Shown piece after piece: positions 16,481 through 64,000 of a stretch of 64,000 bases of DNA (position 1 is the stretch's first letter; every line of letters starts with the position of its first letter). The notes under the pieces are model-generated. The model saw nothing but the letters and a program-made list of their open reading frames with translations, did no database searches and was not told where the DNA came from. This DNA is from Heptranchias perlo (Eukaryota): positions 4,340,001-4,404,000 of the forward strand of contig NC_090340.1 of NCBI RefSeq assembly GCF_035084215.1. The letters are read 5' to 3'. The position numbers were made by a program, and so were the translations under genes.

Positions 16481-17790
16481 TTATATTTTTCCAGAGCTCC
16501 ACTGATCACCGTTTTAAATGTTTCAATACTGCTGTTCTGTTTGTTTCTTTCTTTATCAGTAAATTTTCCAGTTTATTTCCCCTCATTCTATTCTCATCCG
16601 CTGAATATCATATTTTTTCCAATTTACTACTTTGCTTTTTGACTTACTTATATCCTTCTCAATTTTCATCTGAAGCCTTATTTTGTTGTGATCGATTTTG
16701 CCTCGATGTACCACTAAACTTACTTCTCTTATCTGTTCACGTTCATTGGCCATTAGTCGTTCCAGCAGCGCTTCCTCTATTCTTGTGCTTTTTACATCCA
16801 GGGTAAGAAAAGAGTCCTGCACATATTGTAATAACTTAATTCCTTGTACGCCTTTACCTACCTCTTCTTGGCAATTTTTTGGTGATAGTTAAAATCTCCC
16901 ATTATTATTCTTGTTTGTCCTTTACTCGTTTCACATATTTGCTTGCATATTTCTTCCTCCATCTCCTTTTCACTATTACGTGGTCTGTAGTATACCCCTA
17001 TTGTCGTGATCGGTCCATTATCTTTTGTTTCAATCCATATGGATTCTGTTTCTATCCTTCTATTAGTTATGTCCCCTTTTACTGCTGCTGTTCTGTTATC
17101 TCTAATTAGTATAGCTACTCTATCTCCTACTTCCTTCCCTATCCTTACTGATTATGTTATAGCCTGCAATATTTAGTTGCCAGTCCTGTCCTTTATATAG
17201 GCATGCTTCAGTTTTCCCTACTACATCTGGTTCCTGACTACGGATCATTGCCTCCATTTCCTCCGTTTTATTTTGGACGCTGTGTACATTGCTGTACATG
17301 CAGCTTAATTAATTTTTAATAATTCTTCATTTTACTATATTTTTAACAATACTTTTATACTTCTGTTTGATAACTGTATTTTTGCCTTGACCGTTTATGC
17401 CATCGTCATTCGTTGCCCTGCTCTGATCTTTACATTCATTTCCTGTTCCTCTTAACTTTAAGCTTTTGTTATTCCTACCAGAACCGCCCCGACGCCCCCC
17501 CCGCCCCCCCCCCGCCATCTCGCTAGTTTAAAGCCTTATTTATCCTTCCCGCTAGGTCTCTGGTCCCATTCCTGTTCAGATGCAGCCCGTCCCAATGGAA
17601 CAGCTCCTTCCTGGCCCAGTACTGGTGCCAGTGTCCCATGAAATGGGACCCCTCTTTCCCATGCCAGTCTTTCAACGACGCATTCACCATTCTGACCTGC
17701 ATATCCCTCTGCCAAATCGCAAGTGGCTCGGGTGCTATACCTGAGATTACCACCCGTGAGGTCCTGCTTTTCAATTTAGTTCCAGTTCAT
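16480..17790 (-). mobile_element. CR1 5' portion (ORF1 esterase end and decayed endonuclease)
   Basis: SRVVISGIAP...FMGHWHQYW...WDGLHLNRNGT matches the CR1 ORF1 SGNH block DGLHL. Confidence 0.85.
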
Positions 17791-18115
17791 TTTCAAATAA
17801 TTAAATTACTGATACCTGACCGATCACGATGATCTGTGGCCGGTTAGAGCAGAGCTTGGACAATTCTGTCATTGGGATTTCTATAATCCATTTCATCCGA
17901 AACTTCTTAAACAAGGCAAAGGGGACAGTCAGACAGGAACGCCGCTTTTTAATCCATGCTGGCCGTTAGTTATGAAATGTTAATAAACGGGTACCTGTCA
18001 CCATTCTCCTCAGAATAGTTGCAATTATTTTTCCTGTTATTGATTTTAGGCTAATGGACCTGTAGTTAGATATACAGGCACACAAATAAAACGGGTTCCG
18101 CATTGGTCACAAATA

Positions 18116-18277
18116 TTAATTGGCTTTCCGTTCCGTGTAAATAACGTCTGATCTTTGGTTTTTCATCCGTAGCTGAGCGTATTCCGTGTTCTTATGAATA
18201 GGCTTTGCAGTCTTCTTGGAGCCAGTCATATCTAGTGAAGCATAGGTCAGCTTGTTCTCAGGTGCCCTTTGCTTGGT
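18116..18277 (-). CDS. Exon 6: terminal cytoplasmic exon with ITIM/ITSM-like motifs
   Basis: Acceptor gatttcacAG. Phase 0 reads TKQRAPENKLTYASLDMTGSKKTAKPIHKNTEYAQLRMKNQRSDVIYTERKAN*, with TAA at 18118-18116. Confidence 0.88.
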   Translation of the reverse strand, partial: TKQRAPENKLTYASLDMTGSKKTAKPIHKNTEYAQLRMKNQRSDVIYTERKAN

Positions 18278-19124
18278 CTGTGAAATCAATGGTTGGACAT
18301 CTCATGAGTTCGATAATTTACCTGTATGTAGGTTAGTGTTAATCATTAGAATAGCCGGAACCTCGCAGAATCAGGGTTAAATACAAAAGAGTAGCAAAGT
18401 TCTATTAACGCTAGTTCGTGCACTACCCCGCATGCCCGTTTATTACAGGTAACTCGTGTCTCTTTGATCGACTCCTCGGCCGTACCTGGGCATATACTGT
18501 CCTCTATTGATGCTTTGATCCTGGGCCTTTCCAGGAATTAGTCAAATTTACTGCAGCATAAGGCGCCATCAGAACTTCTGTTACCTGCATGGAATAAAAG
18601 TAAAAAATATACCATTTTTATGCTATGCGGTCAGGCACTCCCTCCGCAGAATGACGCGCGCAGGCCCAAAAATCGCGCGAAATTTCCAGGTCAAGAAAAT
18701 GAAGAAAAGTAAGGGGTCAAAGTTCATTCCAGTAGTCCATTTATATGAATAGTCTGGTTGAAATAACCTGCAGCTGGCGAGGTTTATATACTTGAAGTTT
18801 CACTTTCGTTGCAGCAAAAAGTATCAAAACAATTTAGATACTTTCTAAAATTGAGGTTTATACATAAGAAGAATTGTGTTTTATAGTTATACAGTGCATG
18901 GGATTGAATTAGAACAGGGACATTTAGAAAGGGGGTCTGAGGCTAACTTTCAGCAGACAGTTCACTTTCAACATACAGAAAAGTAAACATCATACAGAAT
19001 TCTGAAATCAATAATACGAACACGGAATACAAGAGGTTATTTTTAGCTATAATGTGAACACCTGGTCCACATTTAGAATCCTACCTTTAGATTTCAATTA
19101 ATCCTAAATGTCACACGATCTACA

Positions 19125-19190
19125 GATATATATATGTATATTTACTATGTTTATGTCAATTGATATATATATATATATATTTATTTATTT
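19125..19190. repeat. (TA)n/AT-rich microsatellite
   Basis: Visible tatatata and tatt runs. Confidence 0.8.
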
Positions 19191-19819
19191 ATGCATATTT
19201 AATATTTCTCTCTATAGCTATATCCACCTCTCTCTGTCTCTGCATGACAGACTCTGATGACTCAAATGCGGAGATGAAGTAGGATCAGGGATACAAATGG
19301 ACAACAAACGTAGAAAAGATAGCGGGAAAACATTTTTACTGAGTCAGATATGTTTAACAGTACTTTCTTGACGACTTGCAATTTTCTGGGACACTAGTCT
19401 GGATCGGAAATCACACGCAGTAGACGGCACATATTGGAAAATAACGAGTTATTGCACACACATTTCTGTCCATTCATTTCAATAAATGGAAAATGGCGTA
19501 CAAATAACCCTCAATTTTCTGATAAGTGTTGCCGAGCTTGCTCGGACTCTCGGCTGTTGCGGCGAACCTGCAAATTGCGTCAAAGAGTTGGAGGTAAAAA
19601 CATCGGGATTGTTCCAATATCAATTGGATACTATAATGGGAGAATGAGGCAATTAAACGAAATGTAAATTTCTCACCATGGGTCTCCGCGTGTTCTTAAC
19701 ATCGCAACAAATTCGGTTAACACACAGTATAAAAATCAATTTCCGTACTCCGGTCACAGCGGGAAACGCAAATCGCTAAACTAGCACTGCGAGCCTGTGA
19801 CTATCTGCCGTTTTCTAAA

Positions 19820-22800
19820 AAAAAAATCATTCTCGAGATGTGGGCATCGCTGGCAAGGCCAACATTTATTGCCCATCCCTGGTTGCACAAAAAAGGTGAT
19901 GGTGGGCTTGATAGGACACTGCAGAGGTCAGTTAAGAGTTAGCCACACAGCTGTGGGACTGGAATCACATGTAAACTAGGAACATAGGAACATAGGAACA
20001 GCCGTCTGCCATTCAGCCCCTCGTCCCTGCCCTGCCATTTGATAAGATCATGGCTGATCTGTGATCTAGCTCCATATACCTGCCTTTGGCCCATATCCCT
20101 CAAACATTTGGTTGCCAAAAAGCTATCTATCTCACATTTAAATTTAGCAATTGAGCTAGTATCAATTGCCGTTTGCGGAAGAGACTTCCAAACTTCTACC
20201 ACCCTTTGTGTGCAGAAATATTTTCCAATCTCACTCCTGAAAGGTCTGGCTCTAATTTTTAGACTGTGCCCCCTACTCCTCGAATCCCCACCCAGCGGAA
20301 ATAGTTTCTCTCTATCCACCCTATCCGTTCCCCTTAATATCATATAACCTTCGATCAGATCATCCCTTAACCTTATAAACTCCAGAGAATACAACCCCAA
20401 TTTGTGCAATCTCTCCTCGTAACTTAATGTTTGAAGTCCGGGTATCATTCTAGTAAACCTACGCTGCACTCCCTCCAAGGCCAATATGTCCTTCCGAAGG
20501 CGCGGTGACCAGAACTGCTCACAGTACTCCAGGTGCGGTCTAACCCGGGTTTTTTTATAGCTGAAGCATAACTTCTGCCCCCTGTACTCCAGTCCTCTAG
20601 ATATAAAGGCCCGCATTCCATTAGCCTTATTGATTATTTTCTGCACCTGTTCATAACACTTCAATGATCTATGTACCTGAACCCCTAAGTCCCTTTGGAG
20701 ATCCACTGTTTTTAACTTTTTACCATTTAGAAAGTATCCTGTTCTATCCATTTTTGTTCCAAAGTTGATGACCACACATTTGTTTACATTGAATTCCATT
20801 TGCCACAGTTTTGCCCATTCACCTAATCTATCAATATCCCGTTGTAATGTTATGTTTTCATCTACACTGCTTATATTGCCACCAATCTTTGTGTCATCGG
20901 CAAACTTAGATATGAGACTTTCTAAGAGTCTTCATCTAAGTCGTTGATAAATATTGTGAATAATTTAGGCCCCAAAACAGATCCCTGCTAGCCTCCACTA
21001 GTCACATCCTGCCAGTGTCAAAACGTACCCATTATCCCTACACTCTGTCGCCCTTTGCTCAGCCAACTTCCTAACCAAGTCCACACTTTTCCCTCGATTC
21101 CATGGCCTTCTAACTTAGCTAACATTCTCTTTTGTGGGACCTTATCAATTGCCTTCTGGAAGTCAATATAAATAACATCCATTGACATTCCCCTGTCCAA
21201 TACTTTAGTCACCTCTTCAAAAAATCCAATCTGATTTGTCAGGCACGACCTACCTTTCACAAATCCATGCTGGCTCTCCCTGATCAACTGAAAATTCTCG
21301 AGGTGTTTAGTCACCCTATCCTTAATTGTAGACTCCATCAAATTCCACAGAACACATGTTAGGCTTACTGGTCTATAATTCCCCGGTTTCCGTCTCTCTC
21401 CTTTTTGAAAAAGCGGAGTGACATGTGCAATTTTCCAATCTAGAGGGACAGTTCCTGAATCTAGAGAACTTTGAAAGATTATAGTTCGGGCATCTGCAAT
21501 CTGCTCACATACTTCCTTTAAAACCCTGGAATGGACACAATCTGGTCCTGGGGATTTATCAATCTTCAGTGCTATTATTTTCTTTATTACTATTGCTTTA
21601 CTTATGGTAATTTTATTGATTCCCTGTCCCCGATTCAATATTAGTTTTCTTGGGATTTTCGGCATGCTATCCTCTTTTTTCTACTGTAAATACTGACGCA
21701 AAGTAATTATTCAACATGTCCACCATTTCCCCATTGTCAATGACAATATCCCCACTTTCAGTTTTTAAGGGGCCAACAATGCTCCTGACCACCCTCTTTT
21801 TCCTAATATAACTATAAATGTTGTTTGTATTGGTTTTGATATCCCTTGCAAGTTTATTTTTGTACTCTCCTTTTGTAGCTCTTACTATCTGTTTTCTGAC
21901 CCTTTGTTGATCTTTGTATCTTTCCCAATCGCCAGGATCTGTGTCATGTTTTGCCTTTTTGTATACCCTTTCCTTACGTCTTATACTGTCCCTTACCTCT
22001 TTAGTTGTCCATGGCTTTTTTTTTTGGCAAGTAGAGTTCTTGCCCGTCAGTGGTATAAACCGGCTCTGTATCTCGTTAAATGTTTCTTTGAACATTTCCC
22101 ACTGATCATCAGTCATTTTGCCCATTAACAGATTGGCCCAGTTTACTCTGGACAGTCTCTGTCTCATCCCATTGAAGTCGGCCTTACCAAAGTCTAGAAT
22201 CTTAGCAGCTGATTCACTTTTTTCCCTTTCAAAGATTACATTGAAGTCGATCATGTCATGATCGTTATTGGATAGATATTCACGCACAGTTAAACTGTAA
22301 GCTAAGTCTGGTTCATTACTCATTACTAAATCTAGTATGGCTTGCCCCCTTGTTGCCTCTAGGACATATGGCTGTAGAAATCTATTCCGGACACACTCAA
22401 GAAATTCACTACCTTTCTGAAAGTTGCTAGTCTGCTTTCCCCAATCTATGTGAAGGTTAAAGTCTCCCATTAATACCACTATGCCTTTCTTACACGCTTA
22501 TCTAATCTCTGCATTTATACAATCTAGCACTTCAGAGCTGCTGCCAGGGGTCCTATGCACAACTCCCACTATAGTCTTAGATCCTTTCCTATTTCTCAAT
22601 TCAATCCATAAGGTCTCTGTTGGCTGCTTATCTCTCGTTCTATCCTCCTTTATCAATGAATTGATTTCATCTCGAATCATTAAGGCTACTCCTCCACCTC
22701 TTCCATTTTCTCTATCTCTCATGTAGACCTTATAACCCGGTTTATTTAGTTCCCAATCCTGACCATCCTGCAGCCTTCTCTTAGTAATAGCTATCAAGTT

Positions 22801-23330
22801 ATACCCTCCAATTTGATTTTGAACCTATAGTTCATTTAATTTATTCCTTACACTCCGTGCATTTGTATATAGAGCTCTTAGTTGGGCCACACACCCTAGC
22901 CTGACCTTCAGCTTTGATGCTCGTGTAATCGCCTTACGCCTTCTAGTTTTCACTTCATCTGTAGTGTCTAACTACACTTTCTTTCTGTTGCTCTACTCTT
23001 TTCCCTTTCAATTGTTCTTGAACAACTGTTTCTACTATTTGTTTTGTAAATTTTCCCTGGGTCTTCCCTCTCTTGCTGCTCTCAACTTTACTCCCTTCTG
23101 ACTCACCGCTAAGGTTCGAGTAAGGACGGCAACTTCCTTCCCTGAAGGACATTCGTGAACCAATGGGATTTAAGGCTATCGAACAGCTTCATGGTCACTT
23201 TTACTGATACCAACTTTTTATTTCCAGATTTTTAGAAACTGAATTCAAATTCTCAAACTGCCCTGGTGGAATTTGAACACACGTTCTGTAGATTTACTCC
23301 AGAGCTAATTAATGGGGATAACATTATGAA
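19820..23330 (-). mobile_element. SINE (pieces ~23115-23330 and ~19820-19975) split by a 3.1-kb CR1
   Basis: B-box-like gttcaaattcc on the minus strand near 23270. The tail (gatgtgggcatcgctggcaaggccaacatttattgcccatccct) is the reverse complement of the LINE 3' end at about 51745-51800. Confidence 0.6.
19975..23115 (-). mobile_element. CR1 LINE, near-complete ORF2 (endonuclease + RT) with frameshifts, in intron 5
   Basis: RGGGVAL, MGDFN, AILDLV, NDH (endonuclease); DKSPGPD, QHGF, DFQKAIDKVP (RT); (aacatagg)n tail. Confidence 0.96.
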
Positions 23331-23686
23331 CTGCGGTAGCAGCATTTTTCAACAAACGTGTCAGTTGTTTCCAGGAGGCAAAAGCAGATTTTTTTTATTA
23401 TTCGCCGTAGCTGATGGTAAGTTTTAAGCGATATGTTGTTTTACAATCCATAGGTGACTGTTCTATATCGGCTGCCACTGACCTACTGATACAGACATTA
23501 AAACATCTAGTGTTTCCTTGTATGTGTGTGTGTGTGTTGCATAAGTGCTGATACTCTGCACTAGTTTTGTGAGAATCTTTACAGTGTTAGACTAAAACGG
23601 GGCAAATTATTGCATTAAATAGATTACAACTCTCTTATCTAAATATTTATAAAATAAATATATTAGGATGAATTGTGGAAACTTAC

Positions 23687-23730
23687 CGGCTGTTCGCGAT
23701 GGCCTGATCTTTCAGCATCGTTCTGAGGTC
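23687..23730 (-). CDS. Exon 5: short cytoplasmic linker (G)PQNDAERSGHREQP
   Basis: Acceptor ttcattcattaccAG, donor CCG|GTAAGT, 44 nt, phase 1-0. It converts the phase-1 TM end to the phase-0 start of the terminal exon and lies in non-repeat sequence. Confidence 0.75.
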
Positions 23731-24324
23731 CTGGTAATGAATGAAGTTCAAGATTTTACATTGGAGCATTTTAACAACGTAGAAGGACACTTCCGGGTAG
23801 ACTCAATGTAAAGTATAAAATGATCTTGATATCACATTTTACGGAATTGCTTGGATTCTGAACTGTGTTTGGCAATAGGGCTGGCATTGTTCAGCTGACC
23901 GCGGGACTTTGCGTGCAGCAGGAGGCTGATTGGAAACTCGCTGGATCACTACCCGCAATTCTATGTTCACTGTCCTGAATGGGACAGAAAATCGCACGCA
24001 ATGTAAGGTGATTTTATAAAAAAGCTCCCGCTGAATGCCAGGCTCCAACGGCGGTTGTGGGACCTTGGGAAATTACGCCCCATTTTACACAACACTTTCG
24101 AAATCCGAATCTACCGCTACACCGGTAGTGCTGAAATTTTATTCAAAATATTAGTTGTTGCAATTAGTATAAATAAAGCAGACTGGAATGACTCTCAAGT
24201 ATCCCTCATATTTTAAACCCAAGGTCAAGCTGTTATATTCAACAATCGATCCAGTAACTGTGACACAATGTAAATGTACTTTCAACCGTTCAGTTACAAT
24301 TTACTAACTTTTTCTCTCGATGTA

Positions 24325-27200
24325 TCATGGTATCATAGCAGGTACAGCATAGGAGGAGGCCTTTCGGTCCATCCTGCCTGTGCCGGCTCTTTGAAAGAGC
24401 TATCCAATTACTCCCATTCCCCTGCACCATAACCCTATACTTATCTATTCAAGGATTTTTCTAATTCCCTTTTGACAGATATTATTGAATCTGCTTCCAC
24501 CACTCTTTCATTGCACATAATTACAACTCGCCGTGTAAAATAATGTCTCCACATGTCGCCTATTGCTCTTTTGCCATCACCTTAAATCTGTGTCCTTTGG
24601 TAACCGACCCTTCTGCCACTGGAAACAGATTCTCCTTATTAATTCTGTCAAAATTGTTTATTATCTTGAACGCATCTATCCAATCTCCTAGTAACCTTCT
24701 CTGTTGTAAGGAGAACAATCCCAGCTTCGCCAGTCCCTCTACATAACTGAAGTCCCTCATCCCTGGAACCATTCTAGTAAATCTCTTCTGCACTCTCCCT
24801 AAGGCCTGACCTCCTTCCCAAAGTGCGGTGCCCATAATTGAACACAATTCTCCAGCTGAGGCCATAAAAGTGTTTTATGCCTTTGTTACCTCTAGACTTG
24901 ACAATTCCAATGTTCCACTGGCCGTGCTCCCATCTTTCACACTCCATAAATTTGAGCACATCCAAACCTCTGCTGCTCGTATCCTAAGTCGCAACAAGTT
25001 CCGTTCACCCATCGCCCCTGTGTTCGCTGACCGACATTGGCTCCCGGTCTGAGAAAGCCTCGAAATTAAAATTCTCATCCTTGTTTTCAAATCCCTCCAT
25101 GGCCTCGCCCATCCCTAACTCTGTAACCACCTCCAGCCCCATAAAGCTTTGAGATCACTGTGCTCCTCCAATTCTTGCCTCTTGCGCATCCCAGATTTTA
25201 ATTGCTCCAACATTGGCGACCGTGCCTTCAGCTGCTTAGGCCCTAAACTCTGGAATTCCATCCCTAAACCTCTCCGACTGTTATCCTTTCTATCCTCCTT
25301 TATGCCGCTCCTTAAAACCTACCTCTTTGATCAAGCTTTTGGTTACTGTTCTAATATCCGCTTATGTGACTCGGTGTCAAATTTTGTTTGATATTCGCGC
25401 CGATGAAGCGCCTTGGGACATTTTACGACATGAAAGGCGCTATATAAATGCAAGTTGTTGTTGCTAGCATGAGGTCCTTGCTTTTGTACTCTATGCCTCT
25501 ATTAATAAAGCCCAGGATCCCATATGTTTTTTTTAACAGCCTGGTCAAGTTGTCCTGCCACCTTCAAAGCTTTGTGCATAATATGCGCCACCAGGTCTCT
25601 CTTTTCTTGCACCCCTTCAAAATTGGGCTCTTTTGTTTCGATTGCCTTTCCTCATTCTTCCTACCAAAATGCATGACTTCACACTTCAATGTGTTAAATG
25701 TCATCTGCCATGTGTCTGCCCAGTCTCTCTATGTCTTCCTGAAGTCTGTTACTATCGTCCACATTTTTTGCTACATTTCCGAGTTTTGTGCCATCTGCAA
25801 ACTTTGTAAGTATATCCAGTATACCCAAGTCCAGTTCATTAATATATATCAGAAGGAGCAGTAGTCCTAACACTGACCCTTGGGGCACACCACTGTATAC
25901 TTTCCTCCAGCCTGAAAAACAACCATTCACGAAATGCTCTCTGCTTTATGTCCCCTGGCCAATTTTGCATCCACGCTGCCACCGTCCCTTGAATCCTATG
26001 GGTTTTAATTTTGCTAACAAGTCTATTATGTGGTATTTTATCAAATGCCTTTTGAAAGTTCATATACACAACATCAACCGCACTTCACTCATTAACCCCT
26101 TCCGTTACTTCATCAAAGAACTCAATCAAGTTAGTTAAACACGATTTTCCTTCAACAAATCCGTGTTGACTTTCTTTTATTAACCCATACTTTTCCAAGT
26201 GTCAATTATTGTCTCGAAAAGCTTCCCCACCACCGACGTTAGGCTGACTAATTGCCAGCTTTATCCATCTCCCTTTTTTGTGCAGTGGTGTCAGATCTGC
26301 AATCCTCCAGTCCCCCAGCACCGCCCAATATCTAAGGTTGATTGTAATATTGTGGCCAGAGCCTCCACAATTTCCCCCTTACTTCCCTCAGTAACCGAGG
26401 ATGCATCACATCTGGACCAGATGACTTTTCTAATTTGAGTAGTGCAAATCTTTTAAGTACCTCCTCATTATCTATTCTTATCCTACGCAATATCACTACC
26501 ACCTCCCCCTTTACTGCTACAATCGCAGCATTGTCTTCTCTCGTGAAGACAGATGTGAATTATTCATTTAGCACCTCAGCTATGCCCTTTGCCTCCAAAA
26601 GAAGATGTACATTTTTTCCCTAATCGGTCCCATCCTTCCTTTGACTGCCCCTTTACTGTTTATATGTTGAGAAAAGACCCTTGGGTTCCCTTTTATCTTG
26701 GCCACTAATCTATTCGCATAATCTATCTTTGTCCCTCATATTCCTTTCTTTTAGATCTCCTCCATACGTTCTGTGTTCAGCCTTGTTCTCCATTGTAGTA
26801 TGAATGTTACATTCGTCATAAGCCTCATTTTCCTGTTTCATTTTAATCTCTATATCTTTATTCCTCCAGGGAGTTCAAACTTTGGATGCCCTTCCTTACC
26901 CCCTCGTGGGGATGTGTCTATTATGTATCCGAACCAAATCCTCCTTGAATGCCTCCCATTGTTCAATTACTGTTTTGTCTACCAATTGTTGATTCCAATC
27001 CACCTGGGCATGATCCCTTTTTAACTCACTGAAATTTGCCCTTCTCCAGTTAAGCATTTGCATATTTGATTATTCCTTCTCCTTTTCCATCTTCTAAACC
27101 TAACGATATTATGATCACTATTCCCCAAATGCTCTCCCACTGAAACATGCTCCACCTTCCCCACTTCATTCTCCAGAACTTGATTCAGCAGTGTTTCCCC
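24325..27200 (-). mobile_element. CR1 LINE, degraded, in intron 4
   Basis: GVPQGSVLG...KFADGTK, NFQKAFDKIPH and RRLLGDWIDAFKI. Confidence 0.92.
24857..25465 (+). mobile_element. L2 LINE 3' fragment nested in CR1
   Basis: AFVTSRLDNSN...IQTSAARIL...HWLPV and GDRAFSCLGPKLWNS; tail aaggcgctatataaatgcaagttgttgttg. Confidence 0.9.
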
Positions 27201-27214
27201 TTCCTTTCATTTGG

Positions 27215-28070
27215 CATGGCCCTCGACAGTATCCGTCCCATTTCCTGCACTTACGTCCTCACTCGTCCCGCTTCTTCCCAGAACCATGATAGAGTCCACC
27301 TTGTCCTCACCTTCCACCCCACCAGCCTCCACATTCAACGTATCAACCTCCGCCATTTTCGCCACCTCCACCGCAATGCCACCACCAAACACATCCTCCC
27401 CTCCGCTCTGCTTTCAGGAGTCCATAGGGAACGCTCCCTCCGAGACACCCTGGTCCACTCTTCCATCACCCCCAACATCAGCTTTCCTCCCCATTGCACC
27501 TTCCCGTGCGAGTACTGGAGATGCAACACCTGCCCTTTCACCTCATCCCTACCCACTGTTCAGGGCCCCAAACATTCCTTCTAGATGAAAAACAGATTTA
27601 CTTGTACTTCATTCAATTTAGATACTGAATTCACAGCTCCCAATGCGTATCGAGACCAAACGCAGTTTGATTGATCGCTTTGCTGAACAGCAACGCTCAG
27701 TACGCAAGATTGACCCTGACTTGCTGGTCGTTTGCCATTTTAATTCCCCCTCCCATTTCCACTCTGACCTCTCTGATCGCCACCTCTAATATTGTTCCAA
27801 TGAAGCTCAATGGAAGCTCGAGGAGCAGCACCTCATCCTTCGATTCGGCACTTTACAACCTTCCGGACTCAACATTAATTTCAATAACTTCAGATCTTAA
27901 CCACTGCTCCCATTTTTTTCGGAGACCTTTCCCTGTCTCTGTACTTAGTTAAAAACTGTTTAATCTGTAACTTGTACCAGTTCTGATGAAGTGCTATCGA
28001 ACTCTCTTTCTCCACAAATGCAGCCTGACTTGCTGAGTATTTCCAGCGTCTTCTGCTTTTGTTTTAAATG
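27215..28070 (+). mobile_element. Penelope-like element (GIY-YIG-proximal region and terminus)
   Basis: RVHLVLTFHPTSLHIQRI...RERSLRDTLV...TFPC..RCNTCP...GPKHSF, the typical Penelope RT-to-GIY-YIG linker with Cys motifs. Confidence 0.88.
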
Positions 28071-29030
28071 CATTCTGTCTTTGACCCCCGCAACTACATC
28101 ATCGCTTTCCAGTGCAGTAATAGTTTCTTTGATCAATTTGACCCCCGCCTTTCTTTCTACCCTACCTTTCCTGAATACATTGTAGCCAAGAATATCAACA
28201 CCCAAATCCTCCCCTTCTTTGAGCCAGGTCTCTGTTATTGCCACTATGTCATAGCACCATTTGGCGACTTCAGTCTGCAGCTCTCCATCCTTATTTACCA
28301 TGGTACATGCGTTTACACAAATGCACTCTAAACTTATCTTAAATTGCCTGGCATTTGCCCCCAATCTGATCCCTACTGATGCAGAACTATTCTTTACCCT
28401 AGTGCTACTTGTCTCTTCCAATCCTCTGTGGACCTTGTTTCCCGTCTCACATGTTTCGTCCTGGTGCTCATCCTCCTTTAGTTTAAACCCTACCCCACAG
28501 CAAGTTAACATCCCCGCAAGTACATTGGTCCCAGCTCTGTTGAGGTGCAACACATTCATCTCGAACAGATCCCATCTGCCCCAGAAATAGTCCCAATGCC
28601 CCAGGAATCTGAAGGGCTCCCTCCGGCACCATTGCTCCAGCCACTCTTTAACCTGTCTTATCCTACTAGGCTTATACCAACTAAAGCATTGAACTGGGAG
28701 TAATCCCGGGGACTCCAGTACTCCCAGGGGACTCCTGCACTTCCTGCCTGTTCTTCCCAGTCTGTCTGTCCCACTTCCTCTCCGCCTCAATTCTCTGTAG
28801 CTGCGAGGTAACAATCTTCTGAAACGTGCTGTCCATGAAACTCTCAGCTTACCCTATTCATTGTAGTGACGCCAGCCGCGCCTCAAGCTCAGAAACTCTG
28901 AGCACAAGCTCGAGCAGATGGCGGCATTTCCTGCACATGTGGTTTTCCAGGACACACCAAGTGTTCTGGAGATCCCACATGGGACAGGATGTGCATGCGA
29001 CAGGCCCCTGCTGTCCTGCCATGTTAACTC
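28070..29030 (-). mobile_element. CR1 5' portion (ORF1 and endonuclease start)
   Basis: WCRREPFRFLGHWDYFWGRWDLF...LHLN (ORF1); YDIVAITETWL (endonuclease). Confidence 0.88.
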
Positions 29031-29069
29031 CAGTTATTTAAACTGTTTGTTTACATTTAAGGCAATTTA

Positions 29070-31210
29070 ATATAGAAAATACGAGCAAGAGTAGGCCATT
29101 CGGCCCTTTGGGCCTGCTCCCCCATTCAATATGATCATGGCTGATCGTCTAACTCAGTGCTCTGTTCCCGCTTTATACCCATATCACTTGATCCCTTCAG
29201 CATTAAGAAATGTGTCTATCTCCTTCTTGAATACATCTAATGACATGGCCTCCACTACCTTCTGTGGTAGAGAATTCCATAGGTTCACCACCCTCTGAGT
29301 GAAGAAATGTCTCCTCATCTTGGTTCTAAATGGTATAGTCTCTATCCTGACACTGTGACCCCTGATTTTGAGCTCCACAGCCATCGGGAACATCCTCCCT
29401 GCATCTAGTCTGTCTAGTCCTGTTAGAATTTTATATCTTTCGATGAGGTCACCTCTCATTCTTCTAAACTCCAGTGAATATATGCCTAGTCGACCACTCT
29501 ATCCTCATACGTCACTCCTGCCATCCCAGGAATCAGTCTGGTAAACCTTCGTGGCACTCCCTCCATGGCAAGGACATCCTTCTTCAGATAAGGGGACCAA
29601 AACTGTACACAACACTCCAGATGTGGTCTCACTAAGGCCCTGTATAACTGCAGTAAGACATCCCTTCTCCTGTACTCAAATCCTCGTGCAATGAAGGCCA
29701 ACATACCATTCGCCATCCGAACTGCTTGCTGCACCTGAATGCTGGTTTTCAGCGACTGGTATACAAGGACACCCAGATCTCGTTGCACCTCCCCTTTTCC
29801 CAATCTATCACAATTCAGCTAATAATCTGCCTTTCTGTTTTTTGCAACCAAAGTGGATAACCTCACATTTCTCCATGTTATACTGCATCTGCCATGTTCT
29901 TGCCCACTCACGCAACTTGTCTAAATCACATTGGAGCTTCTTTGCATCCTCCTCAAAGCTCACATTCCACCCCAGCTTTGTGTCGTCTGCAAACTTGGCA
30001 ATGTTACATTTAGTTCCCTCATTTTAGTCATTGATATATATTGTGAATAGCTGGGGCCCAAGCACTGATCCCTGCGGTACCCCACTAGTCACTGCCTGCC
30101 ACCCGGAAAAAGACCTGTCTGTCAATTAATTCTCAATCCATGCCAGTATATTCTCCCCAATCCCATGTGCTTTAATTTTGCACACTAACCTCTTGTGTGG
30201 GAACTGATCAAAAGCCTTCTGAAAATCCAAATACACCACATCCACTGGTTCTGCCCAACCTATTCTACTAGTTACATTCTCAAAAAACTCCAGTAGATTT
30301 GTTGAGCATGATTTCCCTTTCATAAACCCATGCTGACTTTGTCCAATCCCGTTAATGCCCACCAAATGTTCTGTTATCACATCGTTTATAATATATTCTA
30401 GCTTTTTCCCCACTACTGATGTTAGGCTAACCAGTCTGTAATTCCCTTTTTTTCTCTCCCTCCTTTTTTAAGTAGTGGGGTTACATTTGCCACCCTCCAA
30501 TCTGTAGGAACACTTCCAGAGTCTATAGAATTTTGGAAGATGATCACCAATGCATCCACTATTTTCAGTTCAACTTCCTTTAGTACTCTGGGATATAGAT
30601 TATCATGCCCTGGGGATTTGTCAGCCTTTAGCCCCATTAATTTCCTGAGCACTTTTTTTTACTAATACTCGTTTCCTTCAGTTCCTCCCTCTCAGGAGAC
30701 CCTTAGTTCCCTAACATTTCTGGCAGGTTATTTGAATCCTCCTTTGTGAAAGTATGTGTTCAATTGTTCTGCCATTTCTTTATTGCCCGTTATAATTTCC
30801 CCCATTTCTGATTGTAAGGGACCGACCTTTGTCTTCACTAATCTTTTTCGTGGGAATTTACCCTTTATCTAACACTAAAACACTAACCACTAAAAAGCAA
30901 TAACCAACCATTAAGGCACTAACCACAACAACAATAACCACTAAAAACACTAACCAATTAACTAATTAATGGCTGACTTGCACGCGACGCTCCTCTTTGT
31001 CTTGTGACGTCACTTTTTGACTTTCTCGATTTTTGATTTCTTGCGCCGCTCCCTTCACGCTCCGCTTAATCATAGTTGTTTTTAATTAAGTTTTATAAGT
31101 TGATAGATTAGTTTACAGTTCCTTGATTTAAATCGCGTAGCACCCCTTTCCCCCTTTGCACCTAATTCCCACACTCACCAAATTCCCAATTGAAAGTCGT
31201 CAGTTTGTCA
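29070..31210 (-). mobile_element. CR1 LINE (RT region plus 5' UTR-like remnant)
   Basis: KADKSPG, QHGFMKGKSC, LDFQKAFD, RPHLECCVQFWSP. The assignment of 30850-31210 is less certain. Confidence 0.88.
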
Positions 31211-31411
31211 GCAATTAATTTACCTTACTATTTACCAGTGAATGCCCACACTCTACAAATTCCTGATTGAAGGTTCTCACTCGGTTAGCAATCCACCCAT
31301 TTACAGGTTCTCTCTCTGTCTTTGCCAACCTCTGTAGGCAAGCTTAGGACGTTCTCGCTCTCTCTTTGAAAGTTGTGTTCACTTTGTTAAAAAGACTAAA
31401 TGATTTCTTAC

Positions 31412-31522
31412 CTTTATTTTTCTTTGAGAGACATCGCTTTCCAATGATGAGAGCCAACGCCAGGAATATCAATCCGCCCGCTGCAGATGCTGAAATCAGC
31501 AAGTAACCGGTGAACTCACCAC
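31412..31522 (-). CDS. Exon 4: transmembrane segment
   Basis: Acceptor tcttgtAG, donor G|GTAAGA, 111 nt, phase 1-1. GGEFTGYLLISASAAGGLIFLALALIIGKRCLSKKNK is an uncharged hydrophobic helix followed by basic stop-transfer residues. Confidence 0.92.
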
Positions 31523-32127
31523 CTACAAGATTTAAGTGAAATGTACAAATATGAAGCAGTGCACTGTTCAATTGAACAATATCATGACTTAAAAGGTCAT
31601 CAACATTTTAATCAATTGTTGCTATTTTAGTAATGTTATATTTAAGGTATAGTTTTATGAAACAAAATACAAAATGCAGAGCTATGTTTTTTTTCATGCG
31701 TGAGGAACACATTACTGTTATATTATCTTGCTTTAAACTCAAATCTGATTGAAATAAGTTTGCGATATAAATGTGATAATGATTAATTTGTTACTTGTTA
31801 TGACGGCTAACAGTAGTAGCTAAAATTGCAGCTTCCTGCAGATTTCGAGCAAGGTTTGAAGAATGCAGCAGGCAGCGGTCCCGCCTCTCGGCGTAACGAC
31901 TTGGAACTGCAGGACGCGAGTTACTGCTCGATGTTGTCCCAAGCGTCAGTTCCATGTCTCGACCGTGACTCCCACTGGGGCAAGGGGTGCCGAACAGCGT
32001 TGGCTTTGGAGCTGAACACCTGGCAGAAATCCATGGATAATTATATTTGCTCTTCGCAAACAAATGATGGGGGAGGCATCTCAGAAAATAGTTTTACTTG
32101 CAGGATAACTGAGATCTGCAATCTTAC

Positions 32128-32436
32128 CTGTTGGGTAGAGGAAAATGTGAGTGGCTATGGCAGGAATTTCGATGGTATTGTGAGACACCAGGCAGGTATA
32201 CACAGTCCCGGTTCGGACAGGCTGCGTCTCTTCCAAACGGCTGGAAGCTTCATATAGTCCATCGGTTTTGAGTTGAATAATGCTATTTATCCCTGGTGTA
32301 GTTTTAGTCCCATTTTTATACCAAGTGAAGGTGATATTCTCCGGGTAAAACGGATTTGTCGCACACACAACAGTTAGAGACGAAGATGAATCCTTTCCAG
32401 GTTCCCGAGAGATAATTTTCAGTGGAGTTGGCGGAA
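32128..32436 (-). CDS. Exon 3: Ig C1-set domain
   Basis: Acceptor ccatttttctAG, donor G|GTAAGA, 309 nt, phase 1-1. C1 hallmarks: LTVVCATNPFYPENITFTWYKNG ... DGLYEASSRL ... YTCLVSH. Confidence 0.95.
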
Positions 32437-32599
32437 CTAGAAAAATGGAGGAAAATAACGTTACTGGGGCATCATTCAAGGTTATCAACATGTCGTTTTG
32501 TTTCGGCCCATTACTGACAGCACAAAGAGGGAGTTGTTCACTGTGTGTTATCCGTAGCGAAATCGTTAACGGCATCTTCATAAATTTTAACTTTATATC

Positions 32600-32735
32600 G
32601 GGGGTAATTTAAACTTTTATCGCAGGGCGAAAAACGGGTACAACTGATGGGAAAAAAATCGAGCGGGTTCTAAAAAGGGCGGCCGATTCACTATCGCCTG
32701 TTTTGCGCTCACCGCCGAAGCCCATATTCACTCTC
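32600..32735. repeat. MITE-like element in the V-C1 intron
   Basis: Begins gggggtaatttaaactttt, the same terminus as 47913-48021; internal similarity to about 11590-11745. Confidence 0.6.
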
Positions 32736-33371
32736 AAGTATAATAACTGACAAGAAAGTACAATTGAACAAACGCGAGGGGCTTTGGCACACAAGTTCTG
32801 GGTGATATCTCATTTACTGAAGAGTGAAAGGATGATGAAAATGTGGAGTTTGTGGTCAGGTAAGTTTTCGGAATTTAACTGTTAATAACATCGGAGTTGC
32901 AAGCATCTTAACATATAGACCATTAAATTATAAACGCGGGAAGCTGAATTTTAATAGAAACTGTCAGCCCTCCTTAACCAACGCAAACAGAATAAACCAT
33001 CATACAGGATAAGATCCGTGCTTACCGGGCAAATGCGCGCTCGTGTGCAATTCAGTCGAGACACATCCTTTAATCAGCAATTTTAACTTCACATGCTGAA
33101 TGTGCACTTTGAGGTAAAATTATTAACTCCTGTTAATGAATATTGGTGAAATATATATCTTTCTACCGGATAATTGGAATGTATACAAAAATACAACGAT
33201 TGTTATTTGAGTTTCAATGTGAATCCTTCAAAGCACAACCGACAAATGCGTATACAAGTGTGAAACAGTGTAGAATGTAAACAATTCTAAAGCATGATTC
33301 ATGCGCTGGATAAATCTGCTGTGAAATGTTACGGTCACGTTGATCTTCTTCGCCGCTATTGTTATACTTAC

Positions 33372-33692
33372 CCCATACAGTTAAATTGGATCCCGTTCCG
33401 TTTCCAACTAGACTCCCTTGATGGGAGATAGTACAATAGTATACTCCCGAGTCCTTTACACTCACATTGAGTAGCTGAAGGAAGCCGCTGAACTAAGTTC
33501 TGAAGCCAGTTAATTTTCTGTCATCCAGCCCTGTACTTAGATATTCATTGTCACCCTGTTTCCACCAGTTCACCTTCACACGTGGGCCATATCGAAAGAA
33601 GGAAATCGAGCAATGAAAGGAGACGTTTGCACCCGTATTTCTGCTCACGGTTTCGGGGAATTGAGTCACTTTGACCGAAGTTTCAGCGGAGC
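33372..33692 (-). CDS. Exon 2: Ig V-set domain with J-like G strand, interrupted by TAG
   Basis: Acceptor tcttttctgatAG, donor G|GTAAGT, 321 nt, phase 1-1. Reads [28 protein letters not shown]...VNWWKQG...[44 protein letters not shown], with B-strand Cys, C-strand Trp, DSGVYYC and GxG motifs. ORFs 33493..33708 and 33214..33465 share one frame. Confidence 0.93.
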
Positions 33693-33859
33693 CTATCAGA
33701 AAAGACAATCACAATATAATTAGTGAGGTTATATTTCAGGACGAAAAGCTCGAGGTTAGTGGAATCAGGCAAACAGTCCAAAAGGCAATGATACATTTTA
33801 TGTGAAGGAGAAGCTATGCAATTATGCGTTTTTGCGAGAATGCAGGATATAGAAGGAAC

Positions 33860-33914
33860 CTGTGAAAATGATCCCCAGAACAGAGATGCATTGGAGTACA
33901 ACACTCGCCAACAT
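33860..33914 (-). CDS. Exon 1: signal peptide MLASVVLQCISVLGIIFT(G)
   Basis: ATG at 33914, hydrophobic 18-aa leader, 55 nt ending in phase 1, 167-nt intron before the V exon. The donor CAG|GTTCCT is weak at +3..+6. Confidence 0.7.
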
Positions 33915-34010
33915 TCTGACCCAATTGATCACTCAGACCGGGAGCTGGCTGATGGTTTGTAAGAACACTGAGTGGGCGGACTTTGATATACGTCACCGTG
34001 AAGCGTGTCC
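33915..34010 (-). promoter_or_regulatory. Putative proximal promoter/5' UTR of the IgSF gene
   Basis: GC box GGGCGG near 33974 and CRE half-site TGACGT near 33990, about 60-80 bp upstream of the proposed ATG. Motif match only. Confidence 0.35.
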
Positions 34011-41130: not shown

Positions 41131-43619
41131 GATTCTTTTCTTGGGGCTGTTGGAAAAAAATAAATCAGTGTTTTCTTGGTGATGAGCGGGTGATGTGAGA
41201 GGGGAGTATAAGATTGAATAATCAAAATGCCGTTTGGATCCAGTGGGGGTCAACTAGGCTGAATGGAATGTTCTTGCTTCGAAATTTCGCAAATGAATTA
41301 TTATCCTAGGGATAATTGGGCGAATATTAATACAATAGTGGACTACAATCATGAATGCGCTTTTAATCTGAAGACTTCAGACGTCCGAATGTGAAGCTAA
41401 TGCACTTGTTCAGAATAGTGAATCAAACGGTTGACAAATGTGTGTAAAATATGCTCCAAATGTCCAGCATGAACATAACCGTGATCTACATGTTGGGAAC
41501 TGGACAGAGTTTTCCTATTATCCTTATCACTGAGATCCCTCGGAGGAGGGCAATGAATTTGAAGTCGTGAAAGAGCATAAGAAATAGGACCAGGAGTAGG
41601 CCATACGGCTCCTCGGGCCTGCTCCGACATTCAATCAGATCATGGCTATTCATCGACCTCAACTCCACTTTCCTGCCCAATCCCCATATCACTTCATTCC
41701 CCTAGAGTCCAAAATTTATCTATCTCAGCCGTAAATATATTCAACGACTCAGCATCCACAGCCCTCTGAGGCAGAGAATTCCAAAGATTCACAACCCTCT
41801 GAGTGAAGAAATTCCTCCTCATCTCAGTCTTGAATGGCCGAACCCTTATCCTGTGACTATGCCCTGTAGTTCTAGACTCTCCAGCCAAGGGAAACAACCT
41901 TTCAGTATTTACCCTGTCAAGACCCCTCAGAATCGTATATGTTTCAATGAGATCATATCTCAGTCTTCTAAACCAAAGAGAGTATAGGCCCATTCTACTC
42001 ATCCAATCCTCAAACGACAACACTCTCATCCCAGGAATTAATCTAGTGAACCTTTGTTGCACCGTCGCTAAGGCAAATATATCCTTCCTTAGATAAAGAG
42101 AGCAAAACTGTAAGCAGTACTCCAGGTGAGGTCTCAGCAAAGCCCTGTACAATTGCAGCAAGACTTCCTTACTCTTCTCTTCCAACCTCCTTGCAATAAA
42201 GGCCAACATACCATTTGCCTTTCTAATTGCATACTACCTTTTGGTGTTTCTTGTACAAGGATACCCACGTCTCCCTGAACGTCGGCATTTAATAGTTTCT
42301 CACCACTTAAAAAATAATCTGCTTTTCTATTCTTCCTACCAAAGTGAATAATCTCACAATTCCCCACATTATGCTTCACCTGCCGCGTTCTTGCCCACTC
42401 ACTTAACCCGTCTCTATCTCTTTGCAAACATTTTGTGCCCTCCTCACACCTTACTTTCCCACCTAGCTTTGTATCGCCAGCAAACCTGGATAATATACAC
42501 TCGGTCCCTTCATTCAAGTCATTAATATAGATTGTAAAAAGCTGAGGCCCAAACACCGATCTTTGCAGTCCCCCAATAGATACAGCCTGCCAACCTGAAA
42601 ATGAGCTATTTATCCCTACTCTCTGTTTTCTGTCCGTTAACCAATCCTCTATCCATTCAAATATGTTGCCCACAATCCCATGAGCCGTTAAGGTGCGTGA
42701 CATACTTTTATGTGGCACCTTATCGAATGCCTTTTCGAAAAATCCAAAAACACGACATCCGCGGGTTCCCCTTGACCTACGCTGTTAGTTACATCCTCAA
42801 AAATCTCTAATAAATTTTTGAAACACGATTTCCCTTTCATAACACTATGTTGACCTTGTCCAACCATATTATGATGTCCTAAGTGCCCTATTACCACTTC
42901 CGTAATAATGGATTCCAGCACTTTTCCGTCGACGAGTGCCAGGTTAACTGGTCTGTAGTGCCCTGTTTTCTCTATCCCTCCTTTCTTGAATAGCGAGGTT
43001 ACATTGGCTACCTTCCAATCCCCTGGGACCGTTCTAGAATATAGTGAAATTTGGAAGATCATAACCAATGCGTCCACAATCTCTGCATCCACCTCTTTTA
43101 GAATCCACGGATGAAGGCCATCAGGTCCAGGGGATTTATCGGCTTTAAGTCCCATTCGTTTCTCAATTTCTTTTTTTCTACTGATAATAATTACTTTTCG
43201 TTCCTCACTCTCATTAGCCCCTTGGTTCCCATTATTTATGGAATGCTTTTTCTGCCTTCTACCGTGAAGACAGACACAAATTATTTTTAATACGTCTGCC
43301 ATTTCCTGATGCCCCATTATAATTTCTCCTTTCTCAAATTCTAGGTGACTTTTGCTACTCTCTTCCTTTTTATATACTTGTAGAAGCTTTTATAATCCAT
43401 TTTTATATTTCTTGCTAGTTTACTTTCATATTCTATTTTCTCTGTTCTAATCAATTTTTGGTCGCCTTTCCTGGTTTCTAAAATTCTCCCAATCATCAGA
43501 CTTACTAGTCTTCTTGGCAATCTTATAGGCCTGTTCTTTTAATCTAATACCATCCTTATATTCTTTATTTAGCCACGGGTGAATCACTTTTCCCCAGGAG
43601 TTTATATTTCTCAATGGAA

Positions 43620-63270: not shown

Positions 63271-63321
63271 GTGTTCTAATTTCAACGTAATTTAAAAGGG
63301 GTAACTCAGCTAAGGCAAGTC

Positions 63322-64000
63322 ATGGCAGCAGACCTCGCACCCGTGATATGCTCCTCCTGCAAGATGTGGGAAGTCATGGACACTACCAGTGTCCCTGCCG
63401 ACCATGTGTGCGGGAAGTGTGTCCACCTGCAGCTACTGACCGATCGTATCTCGGAGCTGGAGCTGCGGGTGGACTCACTGTGGAGCATCCGCGATGCAGA
63501 GAAACTCGTGGATAGCACGTTTAGCGAGTTGGTCACACCGCAGGTAAAGGGTATACAGGCAGGAAGTGAATGGGTGACCACCAGGAAGAGGAAGAGATGC
63601 AGGCAGGTAGTGCAGGGGTCCCCTGTGTCCATCCCCCTCTCAAGCAGATATGCCACTTTGGATGCTGTTGGGGGGGATGACTTATCAGGGGAAGGCAGCA
63701 GCAGCCAACTTCCTGGCACCACGGGTAGCTCTGCTGCACAGGCTGGGAGGAAAAAGAGTGGCAGAGCTATAGTGATAGGGGACTCAATTGTAAGGGGAAT
63801 AGACAGGCGTTTCTGCGGCCGCAACCGAGACTCCAGGATGGTGTGTTGCCTCCCTGGTGCAAGGATCAAGGATGTCTCGGAGCGGCTACAGAACATTTTG
63901 GAGGGGGAGGGCGAACAGCCAGCTGTCGTGGTGCACATAGGCACGAACGATACAGGTAAAAAAGGGGATGAGGTCCTAAAAGCAGAATATAGGGAGTTAG
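63322..64000 (+). mobile_element. CR1 ORF1 (Cys motifs, coiled coil, SGNH esterase), open to the window edge
   Basis: MAADLAPVICSSCKMWE...CGKCVHLQLLTDRISELELRV...AIVIGDSIVRG...CCLPGA...VVVHIGTND; no stop in 226 codons. Not in the ORF track, presumably because it runs off the end. Confidence 0.93.

Follow-up and report, generated by a model that had tools for sequence, protein, structure and literature searches.

A probably disabled V-C1 receptor gene with a tyrosine-motif tail in Heptranchias perlo, and its relatives in cartilaginous fishes

Exons that read together as a leader, a V domain, a C1-set domain, a transmembrane (TM) segment and a tail with tyrosine motifs, set apart by long introns filled with retrotransposons, raise the question of what kind of receptor they encode and whether that receptor can still be made. 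The window analysed here is the whole stretch of 64,000 nucleotides at positions 4,340,001 to 4,404,000 of contig NC_090340.1 of Heptranchias perlo, and the locus in question lies on its minus strand between positions 18116 and 33914 (all coordinates are those of the window). A sequence-only reading of this DNA had proposed a hidden gene for an inhibitory receptor, combining an NKp30-like V domain with one C1 domain and a SIRP-like tail. Taking three claims jointly, we consider it likely that the locus is a seven-exon minus-strand gene (split leader, V, C1, TM and three short cytoplasmic exons) which belongs to a family of receptors found in cartilaginous fishes, that intact members of this family would work like SIRP-alpha, and that the copy in the window is disabled.

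Exons, domains and motifs of the locus

Re-reading of the window, which is free of N over its whole 64 kb, confirmed the six exons of the earlier gene model on the minus strand, with an AG at every internal acceptor, a GT at every internal donor and compatible phases (1, 1, 1, 1 and 0 in the six-exon model). These six exons are real; the model had nevertheless missed a further exon of 99 nt, and the gene carries two premature stops instead of one. The features are listed below in the direction of transcription, where P0151 to P0154 are Heterodontus proteins and P0155 is a RefSeq model of Heptranchias perlo itself.

33860-33914, minus strand: exon 1, with the ATG at 33914, the split leader MLASVVLQCISVLGIIFT and the first base of a glycine codon, followed by a donor GT
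33372-33692, minus strand: exon 2, germline-joined VJ-type V domain containing YYC, phase 1 to 1
33493-33495, minus strand: first in-frame TAG, midway through the V domain, seen by direct translation
32128-32436, minus strand: exon 3, C1-set immunoglobulin (Ig) domain (LTVVCAT, FTWYK, YTCLVSH), phase 1 to 1
31412-31522, minus strand: exon 4, end of the stalk and TM segment YLLISASAAGGLIFLALALIIG with the stop-transfer sequence KRCLSKKNK, phase 1 to 1
23687-23730, minus strand: exon 5, cytoplasmic exon of 44 nt, PQNDAERSGHREQP, phase 1 to 0
18486-18584, minus strand: exon 6, cytoplasmic exon of 99 nt, reading VTEVLMAPYAAVNLTNSWKGPGSKHQ, a stop and then RTVYAQ, phase 0 to 0, bounded as ag/GTA...CAG/gt
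18504-18506, minus strand: second in-frame TAG, in exon 6, where P0155, P0153 and P0151 have E (KHQERT)
18116-18277, minus strand: exon 7, last coding exon, with the stop TAA at 18118-18116

The additional exon was found by tblastn searches of 15 relatives against the window, in which six of the 15 queries matched 18593-18438. It is homologous to the exon of the relatives that reads APYAxL...KHQERTVYAQ, P0155 having MAPYAALDMTKSRKDPRPKHQERTVYAQ at the matching position, and its phase of 0 to 0 suits a place before the last exon and after the 44-nt exon, whose end is in phase 0. The 44-nt exon aligned with residues 187-203 of P0155 (GAQNDDESSDHCKQPAT); taken alone this match is weak (E about 0.2-1), and its position is as expected. 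Over all 64 kb the 15 queries gave nothing convincing beyond the seven exon sites, and the window thus holds a single member of the family. All searches were run with individual exons, with the parts of an exon that flank its stop, or with proteins of other species.

The proposed architecture of a leader, a VJ-type V domain, one C1 domain, an uncharged TM segment and a tail with tyrosine motifs was borne out by Pfam and by the exon alignments. The C1 exon matched the Pfam C1-set family with an E-value of 1.6e-14 and 54.4 bits (cut-off 21), the second piece of the V domain matched V-set at 1.8e-05 with 25.4 bits, slightly below the cut-off of 26, and the first piece showed a weak match to Ig_3 (0.0028), while the TM exon and the last exon had no Pfam match. 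The V exon closes with a J-like strand of the pattern GNGTGSxLxV, which is contiguous with the V part and splices to C1, and no recombination heptamer (CACAGTG or CACTGTG) was found in 33200-33950. Together, the built-in J-like strand and the lack of a heptamer indicate a non-rearranging, germline-joined VJ exon. A rearranging antigen receptor gene was considered and rejected, as there is neither a heptamer in that interval nor a separate J segment.

On examination of the TM segment YLLISASAAGGLIFLALALIIG, no K, R, D or E was found in it. The last exon carries a canonical immunoreceptor tyrosine-based inhibitory motif (ITIM), LTYASL, at 18250-18233 of the minus strand, and a motif resembling the immunoreceptor tyrosine-based switch motif (ITSM), TEYAQL, at 18187-18170, the two tyrosines being 21 residues apart; it ends with VIYTER. 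This pair supports the SIRP-like character that had been claimed for the tail. The sequences APYAAV, TVYAQT and VIYTER fall outside both the ITIM and the ITSM consensus.

Relatives in cartilaginous fishes

Exon by exon, the whole gene is homologous to a chondrichthyan family of VJ-C1-TM-ITIM proteins, with 62-94% identity per exon to P0151-P0155. The closest relative of each part is given below.

Leader: 17 of 18 residues identical, 18 aligned, Heterodontus P0151 (17 of 18 being the same in P0152)
V piece 1: 68% identity, 63 aligned, Heterodontus P0154
V piece 2: 77.5% identity, 40 aligned, Heterodontus P0153
C1: 76% identity, 101 aligned, Heptranchias perlo P0155
TM exon: 72% identity, 36 aligned, P0155
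44-nt exon: 8 of 13 identical, 13 aligned, P0155
99-nt exon: 65.5% identity, 29 aligned, P0155
Last exon: 81.5% identity, 54 columns, P0155 (also 72% identical to Mustelus P0011)

The closest relative as a whole is P0155, and the searched collection held no nearer protein. This model is without a V domain; its start is not signal peptide-like, and its first 46 residues align ungapped to the window intron at 32437-32575 of the minus strand (23 of 46 identical). Since its N-terminus matches the intron upstream of C1, the RefSeq model begins within an intron, and such a start may be an annotation artefact or may hint at a damaged V exon there too. In the same region the window also has an ATG-initiated open reading frame (ORF), at 32081-32581.

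How widely the family occurs was addressed by an exhaustive HMMER search with the C1 exon against 1.84 billion representative proteins, which gave 709 proteins at E<=0.001, 208 at 1e-10 and 11 at 1e-30. Among the best 150 matches many were proteins of 200-400 residues with one match at 40-66% identity, located at residues ~120-225, a position that indicates a V-C1 architecture in the relatives. Their build is that of the window gene, with a leader, a V domain with GNGTGS, a C1 domain with YTCLVSH, a TM segment and a tail in which LTYAxL, RTVYAQ and TEYAxL recur. Among ten lower-ranked representatives with a single match, nine were chondrichthyan (adding Narcine) and one, from Logan, had no name. 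A further ten representatives included five from bony vertebrates, each matching in two or three stretches at 25-33% identity, of which those of coelacanth and lungfish are named 'SIRP-like' and those of trout, a cyprinid and pig 'Ig-like domain-containing protein'.

Word-seeded searches with P0008, alignment A1 and P0155 as queries gave 19, 44 and 19 matches, and all species-labelled rows were cartilaginous fishes; such searches score word-sharing candidates only and are no proof of absence in other groups. Members occur in the shark, ray, skate and chimaera genera Heterodontus, Heptranchias, Scyliorhinus, Mustelus, Carcharodon, Rhincodon, Stegostoma, Hemiscyllium, Chiloscyllium, Pristiophorus, Amblyraja, Leucoraja, Mobula, Hypanus, Hemitrygon and the chimaera Callorhinchus. 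As far as sampled, the family thus appears from its sequences to be confined to cartilaginous fishes. Within one species the matches lie on one very long contig, and all Heterodontus rows are on a contig of 99,651,266 bases.

The kind of gene is not hidden as had been supposed, there being dozens of RefSeq models in at least 15 chondrichthyan genera. The accompanying guess of a little-described cartilaginous-fish family fared better, as the species-labelled matches are chondrichthyan only and no published description of the family was found in the open literature, where the supplementary gene tables of PMC10751288 and PMC12227049 might list its genes. The RefSeq names are inconsistent. The commonest is 'tyrosine-protein phosphatase non-receptor type substrate 1-like' (SIRP-alpha-like), and others are 'immunoglobulin lambda-1 light chain-like', 'signal-regulatory protein beta-1-like', 'tapasin-related protein-like', 'CD276 antigen homolog', 'NCR3 ligand 1-like' and 'butyrophilin-like', with MHC class II beta-like names for fragments lacking the V domain. 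The locus itself is a further, probably dead, member of this computer-predicted family.

The position of the window gene within the family was examined with a quick maximum-likelihood tree of 71 C1 domains over 102 columns, with support from the Shimodaira-Hasegawa-like approximate likelihood ratio test only and with teleost and pig Ig-like C domains as outgroup. The window falls in a starred clade (99) of 18 rows comprising squalomorph and galeomorph sharks and batoids, where it stands with P0155 at the base, and the Callorhinchus members lie outside. Names of the 'NCR3LG1-like' type occur in several clades further from that of the window. The SIRP-like C1 domains of coelacanth and lungfish form a starred group of their own, in a polytomy with the chondrichthyan family that rests on 102 columns and few kinds of outgroup and agrees with a sister relationship to SIRP as well as with its absence. 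In a V-domain tree of 49 rows, in which the stop of the window was read as X, the window again falls in the corresponding starred clade (99), of 13 rows.

In a crude census of the tails of 56 relatives, 46 had a hydrophobic TM window, 29 at least one canonical ITIM and 18 the pattern TxYxx[VIL], and a charged residue within the TM window was seen in four of the 56. The only Pfam matches in the tails searched were sub-threshold ones to SIT (SHP2-interacting adaptor; E 0.02-0.035), in P0155 and P0050. In two of these four, P0028 and P0170, the charged residue is an arginine and the tail is short (35 and 8 residues) and lacks an ITIM; Heterodontus P0006 has the same 'LLISRC' segment. From their sequences, these arginine-TM, short-tail relatives suggest an activating half of a paired family. 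A different departure was observed in Amblyraja radiata P0003, which has two nearly identical tandem C1 domains (V-C1-C1); either the number of C1 domains varies by exon duplication or this model merges two genes.

State of this copy

Whether the gene in the window can still produce its receptor is answered mainly by the two in-frame TAG codons, at 33495-33493 and 18506-18504, which deprive it of the full-length ORF of the chondrichthyan family. The column of the first TAG holds K in 36 of 52 family sequences, and TAG is one base from AAG; the second takes the place of a glutamate codon and is one base from GAG. There are no frameshifts, all splice sites are intact, and the window keeps all 10 invariant columns of the family and 22 of the 23 nearly invariant ones, the sole exception being a change from L to I. 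With all else intact besides the two stops, either the inactivation is recent or this is a null allele. Most likely, then, this copy is a null allele or a pseudogene of recent origin, unable to make the full receptor, and the 'receptor gene' of the sequence-only reading gives way to this description on account of the two TAG codons and the lack of any RNA contig.

Sequencing reads bear on both points. In a word screen of sequencing runs, four DNA runs from one sample each contained about 0.75 of the words of the window, and three small runs of the same sample, guessed to be RNA, contained next to none; among the runs listed with the words, none is recorded as RNA. Reads of one DNA run (X1) and of the three presumed RNA runs were assembled against 31300-33950 only. 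The X1 contigs covered all 30 bins of this interval, and the contig over 33396-33633, which includes the first TAG, agreed with the window at every position, with no alternative letter listed at the TAG. As this codon is present in the X1 contigs, the first stop is not an assembly slip. From the three presumed RNA runs no contig was obtained on 31300-33950.

Several observations weigh against a dead copy. The intact invariant residues of the family show purifying selection until recently, and the C1 exon leads to the same conclusion, being better kept (~76% identical to P0155) than the adjoining intron, where 23 of 46 residues agree in frame by manual count; over the whole alignment of P0155 with the window, identity is 68% over 150 columns. 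The models of some relatives (P0152 and P0111 in alignment A1) lack the segment of the 99-nt exon. A transcript that skips this exon avoids the second TAG, and the six-exon model may thus be a plausible isoform. The negative RNA result comes from three runs of ~130 million letters each, of unstated tissue and with a guessed RNA label. The reads also come from one sample, maybe the source of the assembly, and contigs drop rare variants, so that a functional allele may have gone unseen.

These observations would also be explained if the gene were functional in the species and the window carried a segregating null allele or a haplotype-specific change, with a lysine codon in other individuals, an explanation that we regard as unlikely. 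Null alleles are common in fast-evolving receptor families of the natural killer type; the conserved columns and splice sites agree with a functional gene, as does the better conservation of the C1 exon than of the adjoining intron against P0155, and an X1 contig that differs at 8 of 824 positions points to sequence variation at the locus. Against it, the sole contig listed over 33396-33633 equals the window, with no other letter at the TAG, and the gene has a second TAG at a distance of 15 kb. One haplotype with two independent stops suggests a gene that is no longer under selection.

Considerably less probable is a shortened product, a leader-C1-TM-ITIM protein made by in-frame skipping of the V exon and the 99-nt exon. 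Their phases (1 to 1 and 0 to 0) would allow this, and both kinds of shortened protein have counterparts among RefSeq models, namely V-less models in Heptranchias (P0155) and Mustelus (P0011) and models without the 99-nt exon (P0152 and P0111). P0155, however, begins in an intron without a signal peptide-like start and looks like an annotation artefact, the three presumed RNA runs gave no contig on 31300-33950, and a receptor lacking V would be without an obvious ligand-binding part. A disabled copy thus remains the preferred description of the locus.

The assembled reads also gave observations of their own. X1 contigs depart from the window sequence at ~1% of positions, the 8 differences in 824 lying in the contig over 31438-32261 at full depth, and at 32351-32496 two X1 contigs of unequal depth overlap, with 0 and 7 differences. 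Such differences and double contigs point to two haplotypes or a close paralogue. At 31486, a difference seen at full depth turns a serine codon of the TM exon into one for cysteine, the residue found in P0155. At 32635-32723 the X1 depth rises up to about 113, with six loose ends within 32671-32709, which indicates a short repeated element in the intron between V and C1.

Likeness to known receptor systems, and the sequence around the gene

Which known system comes closest was considered for the whole architecture as well as for the single domains. The misfit to mammalian NKp30 and to SIRP-alpha that had been pointed out holds, as a C1 domain is present and the V exon is separated from the TM exon by a single C1 exon. 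With SIRP the gene has in common an N-terminal V domain joined to a C1-set domain, one TM segment, and two ITIM-type tyrosines in the cytoplasmic tail; at the level of motifs, ITIM tyrosines with an uncharged TM segment are those of the inhibitory form, and the relatives with a basic TM segment and a short tail recall the pairing of SIRP-alpha with SIRP-beta. The human SIRP-alpha tail has a closely similar motif, LTYADLDM. The difference lies in the number of C1 domains, two in SIRP and one exon here, the family likewise having one except for P0003, and in the C1 sequence itself, the 'SIRP-like' C1 domains of lungfish and coelacanth being only 25-31% identical to that of the window. Chicken SIRP-alpha has been reported as V plus one C1. 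On present sequences SIRP appears to be the best-supported known relative of the family, and the single C1 argues against membership in SIRP proper, with its two C1 domains.

A second candidate for comparison is PRARP, which was reportedly described by Fu et al. in 2019 as having a non-rearranging VJ-joined V domain, a TM segment and a putative ITIM, to which bony fish, amphibians and reptiles add a C1 domain, and is said to be described from bony fish to birds and not in cartilaginous fish. By this description, its VJ-C1-TM-ITIM build is the same as that seen here.

UrIg and UrIg2 likewise share with the locus a non-rearranging single-exon VJ, a split leader, C1-type domains and an origin in elasmobranch genes (PMC12227049). 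In the Protein Data Bank (PDB), no single entry matches the C1 exon better than UrIg2 (9dmx), at 9.5e-18; its score is the sum of three domain matches of ~20 bits, and per domain it is no better than Ig heavy chains. In the nurse shark, UrIg2 carries nine C domains, a number that differs in other species; the terms 'ITIM', 'SIRP' and 'inhibitory' do not occur in that paper (PMC12227049). Membership of UrIg or UrIg2 was rejected, the locus having one C1 exon against several C domains there. Ig light chains and T-cell receptor chains share the V-C1 layout, and differ in that here the V and J-like parts lie in one exon without a heptamer; an Ig light chain, moreover, ends as a secreted chain, whereas this gene continues into a TM segment and an ITIM tail.

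The V domain had been called NKp30-like. The V domain of NKp30 (NCR3) is indeed germline-joined, of the VJ type, and contains a GxGT motif. NKp30 differs from the locus in lacking a C domain and, in mammals, in carrying a charged TM residue, where the locus has a C1 exon and a TM segment free of charge. The likeness was not borne out at the level of sequence, where the best matches were Ig light chains, UrIg2 and SIRP-alpha; for the two V pieces and the family profile, each judged on its best 60 PDB matches, NKp30 and B7-H6 were absent. An NKp30-specific V domain was therefore rejected, a weaker match beyond the best 60 being possible. NCR3 genes are multi-copy in sharks according to the accession list of PMC12227049.

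Against the PDB, profile A1 scored highest with a composite IgA1 model (2rcj, 126.3 bits) and with UrIg2 V-C1-C2-C3 (116.7 bits), followed by a chain named 'CT3' (7t62_B, 104.6 bits) and SIRP-alpha (2wng, 104.5 bits), then by SIRP-gamma (4i2x, 88.6 bits) with a few antibody chains and mainly by light chains (~81-89 bits). The V pieces alone matched Ig light-chain V regions and generic Ig domains. In the ESM Atlas, the clusters nearest to P0151 were 'SIRP-alpha-like' (0.97) and 'Signal regulatory protein alpha' (0.96). An AlphaFold model of P0153, the closest intact relative, was built with alignment A2 and had a mean predicted local distance difference test score of 81.8. For this model, Foldseek gave antibody light chains as top matches (E about 1e-15), and VIA-align gave a flat list headed by B7-H6 (4zso_E; Z 15.0, root-mean-square deviation 4.1 over 193 residues), with Z still 13.3 at rank 50.

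From these likenesses, a working can be proposed for intact members, which would make up a multigene family of type I receptors in cartilaginous fishes whose genes do not rearrange. Their V domain would bind a putative ligand; Src-family kinases would phosphorylate the tyrosines of the ITIM LTYASL and of the ITSM-like TEYAQL 21 residues downstream, and the phosphorylated pair would dock the tandem SH2 domains of SHP-1 or SHP-2 and thereby damp activation. Tandem phosphotyrosine motifs are known to engage the two SH2 domains of these phosphatases. By analogy, intact members probably work like SIRP-alpha; the docking mechanism is deduced from the motifs together with established findings on SIRP-alpha, whose phosphorylated ITIMs recruit SHP-1 and SHP-2 (PMC12975943). 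In the copy studied here, a TAG in place of a conserved lysine codon of the V domain and another in place of a glutamate codon would abolish the receptor, and insertions of long interspersed nuclear elements (LINEs) have enlarged its two 3' introns.

The likeness to SIRP-alpha has its own counter-evidence. TEYAQL has the form TxYxxL with a final L, where the strict ITSM consensus wants V or I. In the profile search UrIg2 (116.7 bits) exceeded SIRP-alpha (104.5), and the affinity to SIRP is a similarity, from which orthology does not follow. Structure as a family classifier had to be rejected, as Foldseek and VIA-align do not separate the candidates. It is very improbable, lastly, that the family consists of B7-type ligands (B7H6/NCR3LG1-like, V-C1-TM with a signalling tail) and the locus of a disabled ligand gene: B7-H6 (4zso_E, Z 15.0) is indeed the best two-domain structural match of the P0153 model and 'NCR3 ligand 1-like', 'CD276 homolog' and 'butyrophilin-like' are RefSeq names in the family, but this Z score is within 1 unit of those of many unrelated two-Ig-domain proteins, and in the C1 tree the proteins named 'NCR3LG1-like' turn up in several separate clades. 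UrIg2, SIRP-alpha and light chains, and no B7-H6 chain, are among the best 60 sequence matches of the profile, and the J-like GNGTG strand, which is untypical of B7 V domains, points together with the ITIM/ITSM pair to a receptor.

With the locus kept as a disabled receptor gene, a wider reading of its family may be put forward, possible if somewhat doubtful: undescribed, non-rearranging VJ-C1 paired receptors, inhibitory and activating, of chimaeras, sharks and rays, a counterpart of SIRP and/or PRARP and a further surviving relative of the antigen-receptor precursor, with copies spread over many megabases of one chromosome under quick birth and death, of which the freshly inactivated copy in the window would be an example. 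The locus alone, one disabled copy of a multigene family, has little weight, and the family matters more. It is numerous in every chondrichthyan genome sampled and carries five or more contradictory RefSeq labels, and the accessible literature names UrIg, UrIg2, NKp30 and PRARP and not this ITIM-bearing family. A proper description of the family would tidy the annotation and would test whether 'paired receptors' of the SIRP type go back to the first jawed vertebrates, and its intact, activating and freshly dead copies offer a series for gene turnover in slowly evolving genomes.

The retrotransposon content claimed for two long introns was confirmed by Pfam matches to RVT_1 and endonuclease families in the following elements.

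19939-22797, minus strand: LINE fragment with endonuclease and reverse-transcriptase ORFs, in the 5.1-kb intron (Pfam)
24560-30652, minus strand: mosaic of retrotransposon fragments, in the 7.7-kb intron (Pfam)

In the 5.1-kb intron RVT_1 matched at 21018-21665 (2.1e-10) and Exo_endo_phos_2 at 21667-22479 (1.1e-06). In the 7.7-kb intron RVT_1 matched at 30126-30413 (2.3e-08) and weakly at 25694-25930 (0.0078), and six of the eight ORFs tested there had no Pfam match. Beyond the gene, 10 ORFs of the window with at least 180 amino acids gave reverse-transcriptase matches or nothing, and no flanking marker gene was seen among them. Retrotransposon ORFs outside the gene lie at 42134-45905 and 63306-63944, with RVT_1 matching at 44640-45407 (5.9e-12) and the others without a Pfam match.

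Downstream of the gene, the first AATAAA or ATTAAA past the stop codon is an ATTAAA at 17953, 163 bases away. Retrotransposon-like ORFs at 17523-18103 of the minus strand start within ~15 bases of the TAA, and the original 3' untranslated region may have been disrupted by retrotransposon fragments. The ORF at 17966-18103 begins with a reverse transcriptase-like 'NYRSISLKS', and that at 17523-17774 is similar to one within the long intron, at 27960-28814.

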